Source of the DNA: Leucoraja erinacea
Taxonomy: Eukaryota
Assembly (NCBI RefSeq): GCF_028641065.1
Contig: NC_073379.1
Location: 12,586,001-12,650,000, forward strand
Direction: 5' to 3'
Length of the DNA: 64,000 bases
The position numbers were made by a program, and so were the translations under genes. The stretch's first letter is position 1. The number at the start of each line of letters is the position of its first letter. This document shows, piece by piece, positions 42,610-63,286 of this stretch. Below the pieces are notes generated by a model that had not been told where the DNA came from, did not search any database, and saw nothing but the letters and a program-made list of their open reading frames with translations.

Positions 42610-42670
42610 ATGATGATTCTCTCCACTTGGCTGCCTACAGTTCTGCTGTTGGTCTCAGTACATGGAAACA
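42610..42670 (+). CDS. Siglec-15-like Ig receptor, exon 1: signal peptide
   Basis: MMILSTWLPTVLLLVSVHGN has a hydrophobic core and a V-x-G cleavage motif. Phase-1 donor A|gtaggt at 42671, as is typical of IgSF leader exons. Confidence 0.8.
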
Positions 42671-43924
42671 GTAGGTGTCTTTTTTATTACGATCGCTTTA
42701 TTGGTACAGTGTAGGTTTATTACTGTTGCCTGTACCGAGTTACAGTGAAGAACCGTGTTTGTGTGCTTTCCAGTCAATCCATGGGATATACTAATATCGG
42801 GATAGTCACAAAGTGCTGGAGTAACTCGGTGGGACAGGCTGCATTTCTGGTGAAGGTGGACACAAAATGCTGAAGTAACAACTGGTCAGGCAGCATTTCG
42901 GGAGAAAAGGCATAGGTGACATTTTGAGTCGAGACCCTTCTTCAGACTGAGGGGACTTAGATCTATCTTTAGACTGAAGAACATGGATAGGTGATGTTTT
43001 GTGTCAGGGCCTGTCTTCAGAAACGTCACCCAGTTTAGATGAGTTTAGTTTATTGCCAGGTGTACCAAGGTACAGAGTAAAGCTTATTTTGTTGTGTGCC
43101 ATCCACTCAGCAGAAAGACTGTACATGAATACAATCCAACCGTCCACCATGTACAGATCCAGGATAGAGGGAATAACGTTTAGTGCAAGATAAAGTCCAA
43201 TAAAGTCCGATTTGAGATATTCCAAGGGGCTTCAATGTGACTTGGATCATGTCTAAGTCACATTGGTAGCTCAGGATCGCCCTCCAGTTGTTGATGGGAA
43301 TGGTTCAGTTGCGTGAAAACAGCTGGGAAGAAACTATCCCTGAACCTGTAGGTGTGCGTTTTCACACTTTTGTACCTATTGCCTGATGCGAGAGGGGAGA
43401 CGAGGGAGTATTCTCTAGAGGTGCTGCCTGACCCACTGAGTGACTCCAGCATTTTGAATCTATCTTTGGTATAAACCACCGTGTCCTTATTATTACATCC
43501 TTTTTATCCTTTTTATAACTAATATTTTTTTTTTGTTACTTTATTGATCTTTCGATTATCATGCTATCTAATGTGCCTACAGACCATGTTATGCTGTTGT
43601 AAATAAGAATGTCATTGTCTTGTTTCAGCACATATGATAATTAAATACTGTTGATTCTTGACTTGCAATCATGCCATACGCATGCACAAAAAATAAAATT
43701 TCCCTATTGGCTATGGTAGAGATGCTGCCTTACAGCGCCAGAGGCCCAGATTTGATCTGACTAGGGGTGCTGTCTGTACGGAGTTTGTACGTTCTCCCTC
43801 TGTGGGTTTACACTGGGTGTTCCGGTTCCCTCCCACACTCCAAGGATGTACAGATTTGTAGGTTAATTGGCTTTGGTAAGTATTAAAATTGGGAATTGGA
43901 AGAGGGGATATGGTCACAATCTCC

Positions 43925-44198
43925 ACCGTGATTGTCCTCCACACTGAGCTGCTTTATCCTGGTTGAGGCGTTTTCCCGCTCTGGGTCCCCGACCAGATTG
44001 AACCGAGTTGCTCCGTTCTCCCGCCGCCCAGGATCCACCAGCTTGGGGTCTGAGCGTGATGATGTGTCGGTAGGGATCCTTCCTCATCCATGTGACCGCG
44101 AGCGGGACCTGGTTGAGTGGAGGCGGTGGGAACACACAGGGTAACGAGGCTGAACCCCCCCTTAATCCCAGTCACCACTGAGACATTCCCTCTGGGAG
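43925..44198 (-). pseudogene. Inverted, truncated pseudo-exon paralogous to IgV D2
   Basis: Reverse complement reads cttccttcag|APRGNVSVVTGIKG(fs)SASLPCVFPPPPLNQVPLAVTWMRKDPYRHIITLRPQAGGSWAA(fs)ENGATRFNLVGDPERENASTRIKQLSVEDNHG. Two +1 G frameshifts; homology stops before the F-strand YxC. Confidence 0.9.
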
Positions 44199-45780
44199 CT
44201 GAAGGAAGATCAGACACTGGTCAAGATAAGCAAGACGAGGGAGCTGGAGCTAATGTAAGCAGGAAATAAGAACTGGATGCTGGATTCATGCTGAATGAGC
44301 TTTAGATGTGTCATAAGTTCATAAGTAATATGAGTTGAATTAGGCCATTTGGCCCACTAAGTCTACCATTCAAACATGGCTGATCTATCTTACCCTCTCA
44401 ACCCAATTCCCCTGCCTTCTCCCCGCAACCCCTGACACCCGTGCTAATCAAGAATCTGGCCATTGACTTGGCCTCCACATCCTTTGACGGATATGAATTC
44501 CACAGATTCACCACCCTCTGACTAAATAAATTCCTCCTCATCTCCATTCTAAATGTACATCCTTTTATGCTGATGCTGTGGCCTCTTGTCCTTGAATCTC
44601 CCACTAGGGGAAACATCCTCTCCACATGCACTCTATCCATACCTTTCACTATTCAGTAAGTTTCTGTGAAGGTCCCTCTCATCCTTCTACACTCCAGCCA
44701 GTACAGGCCCAGTGCCGTCAAATGCTCATCATATGTTAACCCACTCATCCCTGGAATCATTCTCGTAAACCTCCACTGGACACACACACGCACATACATA
44801 CAACATACACACACACATACACCATATACACACATACACATGCACACACTCGCACAAACACATGTNNNNNNNNNNNNNNNNNNNNNNNNNNNNNNNNNNN
44901 NNNNNNNNNNNNNNNNNNNNNNNNNNNNNNNNNNNNNNNNNNNNNNNNNNNNNNNNNNNNNNNNNNNNNNNNNNNNNNNNNNNNNNNNNNNNNNNNNNNN
45001 NNNNNNNNNNNNNNNNNNNNNNNNNNNNNNNNNNNNACGGTTGCAGATGCACACATACATTCACAGATATATGTACACAGAAATGAGACACACACGCAGT
45101 CACTGACATACACACAAAGTAGACAATACACAGTGTCACGTACACACTGTCACATATACAAACGCACGCAAATGAGATGCGTACACATACAGGAATATAG
45201 ACAGATACACAAACATACACCAGAATGTAACACACACACACACATACATAAAGTCACTCGCACGCACAAGACACAAATGGACACACATACACGCACTCAC
45301 ACATTCATATAAAAACATACGCAATGACCCAATGACACACACACAAACCAATAGACATTGGCTCATACGTGCATGAACGCACGCTACAGAATCACACACA
45401 CATAGATATACAACCCACATACACACACCCAGAACTGGTGATCGCTGGTTGGCTGGGATTTGGTGGGCCAAAGGGCCTGTATCTAGAAGACATTTGGACA
45501 GGTACATGGATACGAAAGGTTCAGAGGAATATGGGCCAAAGATGGGCAGGTAGCACAAGTGTAGAGGAGGCATCTAGGTCATCACGTGAAAGTTGGGCCG
45601 AACTGCCTGTTTCCATACTGTATGACTATGATATGACTTCAACATAACAGGTGTCAGAGGTTGTGGGGAGAAGGCAGGAGAATGGGGTAGGAAGGGAGAG
45701 ATAGCTCAGCCATGATTGAATAGCGGAGAAGACCTGATGGGCTGAATGGCCTAATTCTACCCCTATTCCTTGTGACCTAA
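43925..45780 (-). repeat. Left arm of an inverted segmental duplication (partner about 51985-56780)
   Basis: 44199-44680 is the reverse complement of about 56070-56514. 45037-45780 is the reverse complement of about 51985-53142 (CA-rich block and shared CR1/SINE pieces). Confidence 0.88.
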
Positions 45781-46595
45781 TGACTGTCATCCCTCTCCTC
45801 TCCTGGCCACCTTCGGCCTTCATTCCCAGTGTGCGCCTCCCACAGCCAACCTTGAGGGCATTGAAGATAAGACCCCACATCTTCTTTGCAGCCTCCTTCA
45901 TTACTGTGTGTTTGAGTTATTAAACCAGACTGCGACATAACCCGTCTTTATGTTCTCCACCGTATAACCTGTACAGGTTGGGTGGAGTGTTCAGCGACCT
46001 GACGAGACTCCTCAAACTTGTGAGGAAGCAGGGGTGTTGATAAGCATGTTCTTTGTGACTTCAAAATAGAAAATCTGGTAGATTTAGTGATATTGGGGGA
46101 TGAAGTCATAGCGCAGGGGATGGTGTGACCAGCCACGGCCACAGTGTAAGCAGACAAGCCTCGAGCAGCCAAATGGCTTACTCCTGTTCCTCTTTCTCTT
46201 GTTCTAATGCAAACAATGTGGACATTTGCTGCAAGAAAGAACCGTTAAGTTTCAGTACAAAAGCAGGAAGCACTACCAATGTAGTCATTAATGTACTGGA
46301 AAAATAGAACAGAGAACAGTACAACACATGATCTGGTCCTTCAGCCCACCATGTCTGTGCCGAATGTGATGCCAAGTTTAACAAATATCTGCTGACTCAC
46401 AGCATCAGGGATCCTGACCTCGGGTGCTGTCTGTGTGGAGTTTGCACATTCACACTGTGACCGCGTGGGTTTTCTCCTGGTGCTCTGGTTTCCTCCCACA
46501 TTCCAAGGATGTATGTGCTTGTAGGTTGATTGGCTCTCTGTAAATTACTCCTCGTGTATAAAGAGTGCATGAGAAAGTGGGATAACATAGACCTA

Positions 46596-61670: not shown

Positions 61671-61679
61671 GAAGTTATT

Positions 61680-62052
61680 TTTATTCATTCAAAATTATTC
61701 ATGCATTCGCTCATTCACTCATCACTCAGTCATTCATTCATTCAATCAATCATCCATTCATTCATACATTCATTCATTCATCATTCATTCATTCATTCAC
61801 TCACTCATTCATTGATTCATACATATATTCATTCATTCACCGAGTAATTAGTTGATTAATTAATTAATTAATTAATTCATACATTCACTCATTCAATCAT
61901 CTCATTCATTCATTCAATCATTCATCCATTCATTCATACGTCCATTCATTCATTCAATCATGCATTCAATCATACATTCATTCATCATTCATTCATACAT
62001 TCACTCATTCATACATCACTCATTCATTCATTCAATCATTCAGTCATTATTC
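61680..62052. repeat. (TTCA/TCAT)n microsatellite
   Basis: Seen directly. Confidence 0.92.
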
Positions 62053-63270
62053 AGGAAATGTGGATCTGCACAGTCTGTCATTATCCATTCTTCCCAGGTT
62101 TTCTCTGTTTTTCTCTGTGTCAAACCTTGTCTACCCATTTCAGCATCCAATTTGTCTATAACACACAGCATGGAAACAGGCCCTTTGGCCCCATCTGATA
62201 TAATCCCATTTGCCGGCATTTGACCCATATCCCTCTAACCCTTTCGTGTCCATTGTGGACATTGGACTATGTCTCTGGAACTGATGCGCTACATTGCTGA
62301 GAACTATATTCTACACTCTGCATCGTCCCATTTGCTCTACCTATCGTACTTGTTAGACATGGTTGTTTTTATGTGTAGCATAATCTGATGTTATTGTTTT
62401 GCATGAAAAACAAATCTTTTTACTGCACCTCAGTTCATGTGACAATAATAAACCTGAACCTAAAGGTGAAAGAAACTTCAGGGGATGAAGGAGGGTCCTA
62501 ACCCAAAATGTTACCTGTCCATCCCCTTCCACAGACACTGCCTGACCTAATGAATTCCTCGGGCACTCTGCGTTTGCTCACATCTGCAGTTCCTTGTGTC
62601 TTCCATGCTCTGCTCTGTCTCTCCCCAGGCCCTTCACATTCTTTGCCTGAATAGCTCAAATGTGATGGTATTCTGTGAATGGAGCGCTGCAAGTCCAGAA
62701 GGGGGTGAGCGAGTGAGGTTTAGGATTAGGCTTATTATTGGCACGGCTATTGAGGTGCAGTGACAAGCTTTGCTTTGCATGGCATCCACTCAGATTAGAT
62801 AATATGATACATATTTGCAATCAAGTGACACTCAAGTACAACAGGTAGAGCAAAGGGGAAGATCTACCAGAGATGCTCCAGGGTTCTCCAGAGATGCTGG
62901 CTGACCCACTGCGTCTTAAGTTCATGTTCATAAGTTCAAGAAGCTGAATGAGGCCATTCAGCCCATCAAGTCTATGCCACCATTCAATCGTGGATGATGT
63001 ATCTTCCCCTCTCAACCCCATTCTCCTGCCCTCCCCCATAACCCCGACACCCATAATAATCAGGTGTCTTTCTTTGATAAACCAGTATCTACAGTTCCTT
63101 GACACACGGGAACGCCGTCCGTCCATTTCCCTCCACAGAAGCTGCCTGACCTGCTGAGTAGTCACCGCCTATGCTGTAACCATTCCGTGATGCTACCAAT
63201 TAATGTGATAAAAAAGATTTTCCTGTGGAATTACTGAAACTCATTTTAACTGGTCTTGTTCTGTCCACAG

Positions 63271-63286
63271 AAGGAATCGGGACTGA
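63271..63286 (+). CDS. Siglec-15-like Ig receptor, exon 5: end of the short cytoplasmic tail and stop
   Basis: Branch-like ttttaac plus cttgttctgtccacag| acceptor. The phase-2 join gives (R)RNRD-TGA. Summed CDS is 61+360+333+100+16 = 870 nt = 289 aa + stop. Confidence 0.65.

Follow-up and report, generated by a model that had tools for sequence, protein, structure and literature searches.

A Siglec-15-like V-V receptor of the skate Leucoraja erinacea from a batoid lineage that lacks the sialic-acid arginine

Paired immunoglobulin (Ig) receptors that have a lysine anchor are widespread among vertebrates, and the primate paired Siglecs (Siglec-5/14 and Siglec-11/16) form activating/inhibitory pairs in which gene conversion keeps the ligand-binding V domains of a pair alike. 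TIM proteins are recognised by a single six-cysteine V domain, a mucin stalk, and a tyrosine-bearing tail. Siglec-15 is regarded as one single lectin, conserved “from fish to mammals” and dependent on its arginine (PMC7226832), and its defining features are a V-set plus C2-set ectodomain and a transmembrane (TM) lysine that recruits DAP12 or DAP10 (PMC10264397, PMC7226832). Specifically, it holds an extra C'-C'' disulfide (C95-C104 in human; PMC10264397), and its F-strand arginine R143 is essential for sialic acid, the R143A substitution abolishing binding (PMC10264397, PMC7226832). The literature searched yielded no paper on Siglec-15 relatives in cartilaginous fish, and the MDIRs have been described as CD300/TREM/pIgR-like (PMC3031540).

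The window analysed here is a stretch of 64,000 nucleotides of the Leucoraja erinacea genome, in which direct reading confirms that the five-exon receptor gene at 42610-63286 is real and intact. The elements of the locus are the following:

42610-42670, forward strand: exon 1, with the ATG and signal peptide (20 codons plus 1 base, phase 1, donor ACA/GTAGGT)
43940-44350, reverse strand: degenerate inverted copy of the start of the D2 exon (its first ~290 nt) together with the acceptor region
44866-45036, no strand: N gap in intron 1, noncoding, TG/CA-rich simple sequence
49295-49654, forward strand: exon 2, D1, a Siglec-15-type V-set domain with the canonical pair Cys39-Cys120, the extra pair Cys70/Cys80, and Asn121 in place of the essential Arg
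53143-53649, no strand: N gap in intron 2, noncoding, located at the corresponding simple repeat of the inverted duplication
56515-56847, forward strand: exon 3, D2, a second V-set domain with the family motif VTWMRKD.YR, Leu after the F-strand Cys, and an unusually short FG loop
61258-61357, forward strand: exon 4, with a short stalk, the TM helix bearing Lys268 (ALGVKSLVLL), and the tail start, phase 2
61358-61406, forward strand: intron-4 read-through, which gives the 300-aa RefSeq isoform X1 a different C-terminal end of 15 residues
63271-63286, forward strand: coding part of exon 5, the last four codons plus TGA at 63284-63286

The five exons of the original prediction, their canonical sites, and the intron phases 1,1,1,2 are borne out by direct reading of the exon borders, with AG and a pyrimidine tract at every acceptor and GT at every donor, and by exon-wise identity with RefSeq XP_055488088.1 (Leucoraja erinacea, 289 aa), the protein of this gene, which contains each translated exon as an exact substring. 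The exons were compared singly, and XP_055488088.1 (P0001), found by the exon-2 search, served as the query of the full-length searches and for residue numbering. The four split codons match its residues T21, A141, A252, and R285, while the leader encoded by exon 1 corresponds to its residues 1-20 and equals that of the Amblyraja radiata orthologue (P0002). Contrary to what had been claimed, this is no hidden gene, given that RefSeq already predicts exactly this protein, under the misleading automatic name “hepatitis A virus cellular receptor 1-like isoform X2”. RefSeq lists two isoforms, the 289-aa form and the intron-4 read-through form; the latter, an intron-retention isoform, suggests transcript evidence behind the model, and the receptor is probably expressed. 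The 3' UTR presumably ends at the AATAAA at 63823.

TG/CA-rich simple sequence borders both N gaps, which lie inside introns 1 and 2, so that no reading frame crosses either of them. The D1 exon is on the piece between the two gaps, and its order and orientation therefore rest on scaffolding. A chimera of assembly or annotation, in which exons on three gap-separated pieces would come from different genes or an exon would have been lost in a gap, could draw on this position, on the inverted repeats that flank the D1 exon, and on gap lengths that are only estimates. It is nonetheless very improbable: leader, D1, D2, and TM are colinear with those of other genera, with only 2-6 extra residues at the junctions, the contiguous A. 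radiata model matches the leader and D1 at 86-87% identity, the exon phases fit, and the repeats, at only 84-88% similarity, are not collapsed haplotypes. The placement of D1 is likewise supported by the identical RefSeq model and by orthologues in which leader, D1, and D2 follow one another in this order without a further domain. The inverted D2 copy shares ~85% identity, carries frameshifting indels, is cut short at its 3' end, and is a pseudo-exon in intron 1. The readable 42-64 kb contain no ITIM-/ITAM-like exon, no C2 exon, and no other hallmark of an Ig F strand; the additional C2 or ITIM exon that the original prediction had envisaged as speaking against it, for example in an N gap, is thus absent from the readable sequence, and the gaps are intronic and frame-free.

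RefSeq, Pfam, and the reading of 42-64 kb agree with the predicted 289-aa protein composed of a leader, two V domains, and a lysine-bearing TM segment, ending in a 9-residue cytoplasmic tail (RDKTRRNRD) without ITIM or ITAM. Both D1 (E = 9.1e-14) and D2 (E = 1.1e-13) match the Pfam V-set, and the AF2 model (pLDDT 82) folds into two beta-sandwiches and a TM helix, predicted at residues 257-288, that encloses the single Lys (K268) of the TM segment. In Foldseek, the whole model is best matched by the V-V proteins JAML, pIgR, and CD226; JAML and CD226 owe this rank to their tandem V-V arrangement, but they are only 15-20% identical to the skate receptor and have no motifs in common with it, so the likeness is one of architecture only. 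A single mid-membrane basic residue and a short tail without ITIM or ITAM are class features of adaptor-coupled activating receptors, the type (with DAP12 or a similar partner) to which the skate protein would belong.

The relationship to Siglec-15 emerges from profile searches. A profile of the family (~35 relatives) run against the PDB finds human Siglec-15 (7ZOZ) best, at 82.7 bits in one domain (E = 1.1e-22), with an alignment that covers the W, the PCTFTHP motif, the extra Cys pair, and YxCRVE; the next whole chains, without domain summing, reach at most 46.7 bits (JAML, itself in two stretches, and CAR, in one stretch), and the 69.6 bits of pIgR are a sum in which the best single domain has ~30 bits. 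A profile built from the arginine-less members only still ranks Siglec-15 as the best single domain (55.5 bits vs 48 for SCN2B). Skate D1 by itself, conversely, scores slightly higher with SCN2B (37.2 bits) than with Siglec-15 (34.1 bits), and the fold search of D1 places 7ZOZ 16th, among generic V-sets. Judged by these scores, the Siglec-15 link of skate D1 comes through the family and not through D1 alone.

The lead of SCN2B for D1 alone, that of SCN2B, SCN4B, and MPZL1 in the fold search, and the RefSeq names are what would speak for membership in another described family (TIM/HAVCR1, the sodium-channel beta-2 subunit, or a skate MDIR/CD300-type receptor). All of these share with the skate receptor a V-set ectodomain of generic V fold, and some a charged TM residue. 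No specific sequence affinity to them emerged from the searches, however, and such a membership is highly unlikely. TIM and SCN2B have a single V domain and other hallmarks; in particular, TIM/HAVCR1 was rejected on a D1 with four and not six cysteines, two V domains, no mucin region, the 9-residue tail, and a D1 score of 29.9 bits, lower than that of Siglec-15. Both profiles rank Siglec-15 first per single domain, the best 60 PDB matches of the family profile include no chain of CD300, TREM, or NKp44, and no Raja eglanteria MDIR is among the sequence matches to the skate receptor.

The Siglec-15 motifs originally quoted for D1 and the TM segment align as stated. Skate D1 has in common with Siglec-15 the V-set type, the N-terminal extension, the PCTFT motif, the RF.F.GN...D.S..VE.L motif, and Cys70 and Cys80 (XP_055488088.1), which align with the extra C'-C'' pair and would form its disulfide; the TM segment shares a central Lys in an ALG.K.L.LL context. 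On the other hand, the second domain of Siglec-15 is C2 and that of the skate receptor is V-set, Arg143 is matched by Asn, the equivalents of Trp44 and Tyr154 are missing in skate D1, and the cytoplasmic part of Siglec-15 is longer. The genomic setting differs too: the skate gene, one of many paralogues, neighbours a TESK-like exon instead of lying in the mammalian SIGLEC15 neighbourhood. A SIGLEC15 orthologue is ruled out by the V-set D2, the V-V fold matches, and the lack of a readable C2 exon, and the gene is nested in an elasmobranch expansion and is itself one of at least four L. erinacea paralogues among the matches listed, in agreement with the earlier view that it is not a 1:1 orthologue.

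The skate gene belongs to a Siglec-15-derived family of V-V receptors of sharks and rays, whose other members exist solely as RefSeq predictions (e.g., LOC129695295 and LOC129695285 of L. erinacea) and match XP_055488088.1 with E from 1e-75 to 1e-49. Once aligned, 35 members are colinear from end to end (leader, Siglec-15-type V, V with VTWMRKD.YR, and either a lysine TM or an ITIM tail), and the family thus holds both activating-type members with the TM Lys and inhibitory-type members with an ITIM-like tail. The skate gene shares with these receptors the exon plan, the domain order, 40-55% identity, the D2 motif, and the lysine TM of the activating members. The proposal of a lineage-specific, Siglec-15-derived family holds for the V-V form but not for the D1-type domain, which is also found with ITIM-like tails in salamander and in proteins of lungfish and lamprey; only the V-V form looks elasmobranch-specific.

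Most elasmobranch V-V receptors keep the YxCRVE arginine, whereas skate D1 reads YQCNVN, with Asn121 at this position. The absence of the sialic-acid arginine, the residue that forms a salt bridge to the sugar, was noticed in the original prediction and extends to both domains, as D2 has Leu at the corresponding position in the skate receptor and in the whole family. The orthologues from A. radiata and Rhinoraja likewise carry Asn in D1; the other arginine-less members have N, H, Y, or S. The receptor might still be a working lectin that binds sialylated or other glycans via a non-canonical site or D2: the Siglec-15-specific C'-C'' cysteines and the overall D1 scaffold are kept, the N-terminal Trp persists in 4 of the 8 arginine-less orthologues, and D1 is under constraint, as the lineage has persisted through the orders of rays and skates. 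Such retained glycan binding is unlikely, however, given the effect of R143A on Siglec-15, the loss in skates of the arginine, the N-terminal Trp, and the G-strand aromatic altogether, and the family-wide Leu of D2; a change of ligand would fit better.

What is new here is that D1 and the leader put the skate gene in an arginine-less batoid lineage, with which D2 is discordant. In the D1 tree, the skate gene and A. radiata form a pair (100/100) within a clade of 8 arginine-less rows (100/98), itself part of a ray-and-skate clade (97/97). The arginine-less clade has one gene in each of the 8 ray and skate species in which it was found, covers Rajiformes, Torpediniformes, Rhinopristiformes, and Myliobatiformes, and leaves sharks outside; its members have long branches and, apart from the other V-V receptors, a leader type of their own and a 'DL' motif. 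A third skate orthologue, from Rhinoraja (P0011), retains Asn at this site, the lysine of the TM segment, and the RDKTR tail. A topology that unites all D1s of skates is not formally rejected by the AU test (delta lnL 23.4, p = 0.072). In the D2 tree, skate D2 joins the local paralogues instead (AU p = 0.0088), which suggests exon conversion. It would appear that the D2 exon was homogenised with those of nearby paralogues and that D1 and the leader retained an identity of their own. The primate paired Siglecs similarly combine lysine-TM and ITIM-tailed members, alike ectodomains, and signs of exon-level gene conversion, but there the V domain is homogenised, whereas in the skate gene it seems to be the membrane-proximal D2, and the N-terminal D1 is distinct and arginine-less.

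The long D1 and D2 branches could alternatively indicate a decaying or non-signalling relic, i.e., a pseudogene in progress or a silent model with an inconsequential lysine and tail. Among the runs examined, the D1 exon is present only in sequencing runs X1-X4 of one study and is absent from every run recorded as RNA; moreover, the D2 FG loop of the skate receptor is the shortest in the family, the A. radiata model (146 aa) ends after D1, and intron 1 harbours the degenerate D2 copy. Decay is nevertheless rather improbable, considering that the 289-codon frame is intact over five exons with canonical sites, that seven other species have intact orthologues with this architecture, that the skate-to-skate D1 distance resembles that of arginine-keeping paralogous pairs, and that RefSeq holds two isoforms.

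The best explanation, with a probability of roughly 0.6, is a type I receptor of the Siglec-15 lineage that belongs to an arginine-less batoid branch, has acquired a new ligand, and transmits an activating signal through its lysine and an adaptor. Gene structure, domain types, kinship with the family, arginine loss, and conservation of the lineage are established by the data, while expression, adaptor coupling, and the new ligand are inferred. According to this mechanism, the ectodomain would no longer bind sialic acid canonically and would recognise some other ligand; once the ligand is engaged, the membrane Lys would pair with the Asp of an adaptor that carries an ITAM or YxxM motif (DAP12, DAP10, or FcR gamma type), and an activating signal would be transmitted. 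A more specific scenario can be put forward tentatively, as possible but doubtful: in an ancient arginine-less Siglec-15 offshoot shared by all four batoid orders, D1 may have switched to a self-protein or pathogen ligand while the activating anchor was kept and the ligand-binding exon was shielded from D2-type conversion, the reverse of the primate pattern.

The skate receptor is not a new kind of system. The locus shows that the V domain of Siglec-15 seeded a multigene V-V family in sharks and rays, which comprises activating-type and inhibitory-type forms, and that a branch present in all four ray and skate orders lost the sialic-acid arginine long ago with its genes still intact. The misleading database names HAVCR1-like and SCN2B-like are hereby corrected, and comparative immunologists obtain a natural candidate for a “ligand-switched” Siglec-15 domain, together with a probable case of domain-specific concerted evolution.

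The original prediction read the structure of the five-exon receptor gene correctly, and the gene is real. All acceptors consist of an AG with a pyrimidine tract, all donors carry a GT and the phases are 1,1,1,2, in compliance with the predicted five-exon model. The features of the transcribed region, with the exons coding for the first V-set domain (D1), the second (D2) and the transmembrane segment (TM) read directly from the stretch, are as follows:

42610-42670, plus strand, exon 1, begins ATG ATG, 20 codons and one base, donor GTAGGT
49295-49654, plus strand, exon 2 (D1)
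56515-56847, plus strand, exon 3 (D2)
61258-61357, plus strand, exon 4 (TM)
61697-62053, intron 4, (ATTC)n microsatellite of about 90 copies
63271-63286, plus strand, exon 5, stop TGA at 63284-63286
63823, AATAAA downstream of exon 5

The exons were compared one by one with XP_055488088.1 (P0001, 289 aa), which was retrieved with exon 2 as query at 100% identity. The translation of each of the five exons is an exact substring of this protein, the split codons give residues 21, 141, 252 and 285, and the full model equals P0001, which establishes the gene structure. The gene is thus not "hidden", as had been proposed, since RefSeq already lists its product; the automatic name, "hepatitis A virus cellular receptor 1-like isoform X2", is misleading and looks wrong. 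In isoform X1 (300 aa), the exon-4 donor is not used and the coding sequence extends into intron 4; that RefSeq lists two isoforms is a hint of transcript support. The intron-4 microsatellite is the source of the IHSF repeat translation in the ORF list. About 10 kb upstream of the receptor gene and head-to-head with it lies the following element:

32593-32820, minus strand, open stretch ending in a protein-kinase glycine loop

It resembles the first coding exon of TESK1; a PDB sequence search with this TESK-like exon returned no significant match.

The protein has the predicted layout of two V domains, a transmembrane lysine and a nine-residue tail devoid of ITIM and ITAM. Specifically, the Pfam V-set model matches both D1 and D2 (E about 1e-13). 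AlphaFold2, run on the family alignment, predicts two beta-sandwiches followed by a helix spanning residues 257-288 (pLDDT 82); this helix bears a single lysine, K268, in mid-membrane position, and the cytoplasmic tail, RDKTRRNRD, contains no signalling motifs. The motifs quoted in the original prediction are all found where it had placed them. Residue 243 of P0001 (window ~56820-56822) is an additional cysteine with no apparent partner (..FQCEIQL..) in the final, membrane-adjacent strand of D2; it is shared with the Rhinoraja orthologue P0011, is replaced by Ser, Arg or Tyr in other family members and could allow an interchain disulfide. Searches with the predicted fold are of no help for family membership: Foldseek with the whole model matched tandem-V proteins (JAML, pIgR, CD226), D1 alone matched generic V-sets, with human Siglec-15 (PDB 7ZOZ) at rank 16 yet at the joint highest identity, and the ESM Atlas gave generic V-set clusters only.

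The kinship of D1 with Siglec-15 is established by family profiles. In the comparison with all PDB sequences, the family profile places 7ZOZ first with a single domain (E = 1.1e-22, 82.7 bits), the next whole-chain scores free of summing inflation being at most 46.7 bits (JAML over two stretches, CAR over one); those of pIgR combine several domains. The alignment with 7ZOZ covers the N-terminal Trp, PCTFTHP, the extra cysteine pair and YFCRVE of the human protein; the C95-C104 disulfide has been described as unique to Siglec-15 (PMC10264397). D2 also finds its best single-domain PDB match in the Siglec-15 V domain (31.5 bits). On its own, D1 of this gene is not decisive, with 37.2 bits for SCN2B and 34.1 bits for Siglec-15; a profile built only from the members without the essential arginine still has Siglec-15 as its best single-domain match (55.5 bits versus 48 for SCN2B), and an SCN2B identity is rejected on this basis. 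Hence, the Siglec-15-derived origin put forward in the original prediction stands through the family profile and not through D1 alone: judging from these scores, the link is real but carried by the family rather than by this gene.

The gene is not Siglec-15 itself, as had been anticipated. A one-to-one SIGLEC15 orthologue is rejected because the skate gene is one of several paralogues and lacks both the defining arginine and the C2 domain. A TIM/HAVCR1 identity was also discarded: D1 has four cysteines, the ectodomain consists of two V domains and lacks a mucin region, and the tail is only nine residues long. The MDIRs, described as CD300/TREM/pIgR-like (PMC3031540), are not among the matches, and the MDIR/CD300 reading is considered unlikely.

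The family comprises about 50 ray and skate relatives with 40-55% identity (Hemitrygon, Hypanus, Mobula, Pristis, Narcine, Amblyraja, Rhinoraja and Leucoraja), to which profile searching added sharks (Heterodontus, Heptranchias, Mustelus, Chiloscyllium and Hemiscyllium). Their automatic names are diverse, including Siglec-15, sialoadhesin-like, pIgR-like, JAM-like and uncharacterized. In the family alignment, activating-type members carry the membrane segment IPLGLK..LLVM and a short basic tail, and inhibitory-type members a neutral TM and long tails with CTYASI and VIYAAV motifs. The orthologues P0013 (Pristis) and P0022 (Mobula birostris) have alternative isoforms with a short hydrophilic end (..IQT.PLLE.ENP..) in place of the lysine-TM exon, which are probably secreted forms; the motif of this exon was not found in the skate locus. 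In a representative search, the best 150 matches were dominated by multi-Ig proteins with additive domain scores and were rescored per domain. The W..CRVE type of D1 also occurs outside elasmobranchs, in salamanders (P0098, P0127), lungfish Siglec-15 (P0105), gar SIG15 (P0115) and lampreys (P0097, P0161), and the salamander tails (CTYADI/VTYAVV) resemble those of inhibitory shark and ray members. In light of these proteins, the paired, Siglec-15-like design may predate cartilaginous fish and extend beyond them.

The sialic-acid contacts of Siglec-15 are R143, W44 and Y154 (PMC10264397), and R143 and the TM lysine are kept from fish to mammals (PMC7226832). As predicted, the essential arginine is missing from the skate gene: the F-strand of D1 reads YQCNVN, with Asn at this position, where most relatives have YxCRVE, and D2 has Leu, as in the entire family. 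Maximum-likelihood analysis of 57 D1 domains pairs this gene with its Amblyraja radiata orthologue P0002 (support 100/100) and nests the pair in an eight-row clade (100/98) to which each species contributes a single gene: Narcine, Pristis, two Mobula, Hemitrygon, Hypanus and the skates. In all eight members the arginine is replaced by N, H, Y or S. The Trp44 equivalent, too, is absent from the skate and Narcine members, and in the skates the G-strand aromatic is likewise gone. P0011, a third skate orthologue, shares the Asn, the lysine TM and the RDKTR tail. The sister group of the clade consists of the remaining D1s of rays and skates (97/97), with sharks outside. The clade has its own leader type, in which the Trp at position 7 is conserved, and a DL motif that is missing in other members. 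The alternative in which all skate D1s group together is worse by 23.4 lnL and is not formally rejected by the AU test (p = 0.072); the branches of the clade are long, and arginine loss is also sporadic elsewhere in the family. The arginine-less lineage is retained in each of the four orders of rays and skates. The orthologues of Mobula (LOC134346383), Hypanus (LOC132396280) and Rhinoraja (LOC144592307) have numbers in direct sequence with those of family members that keep the arginine, and this RefSeq gene numbering, by itself, suggests that the orthologue lies inside the family cluster in other rays.

The history of D2 is discordant, as these domains cluster by taxon rather than by D1 lineage. 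The D2 of this gene groups with other skate D2s and that of the Pristis member with other Pristis D2s; forcing the D2s of the eight arginine-less members into one clade costs 46.1 lnL (p-AU 0.0088). The constraint group was defined from the D1 tree, and the D2 tree had been inspected before this test. Most simply, the D2 exon appears to have been converted or exchanged among neighbouring paralogues, with the leader and D1 staying separate. The D2 exon has been duplicated locally, because intron 1 contains a degenerate inverted copy of it, which lies on the minus strand in the left arm of an old inverted duplication and is about 85% identical, frameshifted and 3'-truncated. The arms of this duplication, at 43.9-45.8 kb and 52.0-56.5 kb (more finely, 43900-45760 inverted versus 52000-56850), are 84-88% alike and bracket the D1 exon. 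The locus also contains the following:

44866-45036, intron 1, N run (assembly gap)
48612-51387, plus strand, introns 1-2, reverse-transcriptase-bearing retroelement fragment
53143-53649, intron 2, N run (assembly gap)
59555-60824, minus strand, intron 3, reverse-transcriptase-bearing retroelement fragment

The two retroelement fragments are 91-93% complementary and form long inverted repeats around the D1-D2 region. Both gaps interrupt TG/CA-rich simple sequence at matching repeat points of the two duplication arms, and neither is crossed by a reading frame. Since the D1 exon sits on the piece between them, its placement rests on scaffolding. Indirect evidence from sequence comparison favours the present exon order: the RefSeq model agrees in full, P0002 has leader and D1 in one contiguous stretch (87% identity over D1), and orthologues of other genera are colinear in leader, D1, D2 and TM, with no additional domain. 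The original prediction had considered that extra C2 or ITIM exons might lie, for instance, in a gap; the gaps are intronic, and a scan of the readable 42-64 kb revealed no further Ig F-strand hallmark or ITIM- or ITAM-like exon.

Four sequencing runs from one study, of a kind not recorded and none on record as RNA, contain 44-58% of the D1-exon words, a weak sign of expression.

Siglec-15 signals via an adaptor through K274. By analogy, the predicted receptor would reach the cell surface with an aspartate-bearing adaptor of the DAP12, DAP10 or FcR gamma type and would signal through it, and its ligand would no longer be sialic acid in the canonical pocket. The gene is a Siglec-15-derived, predicted adaptor-type Ig receptor, a variant within a known kind. 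Literature searches that included elasmobranchs and Leucoraja turned up no publication on cartilaginous-fish receptors of the Siglec-15 type. The additions made here are an arginine-less lineage present in all four orders of rays and skates and the discordant history of its D1 and D2 domains.
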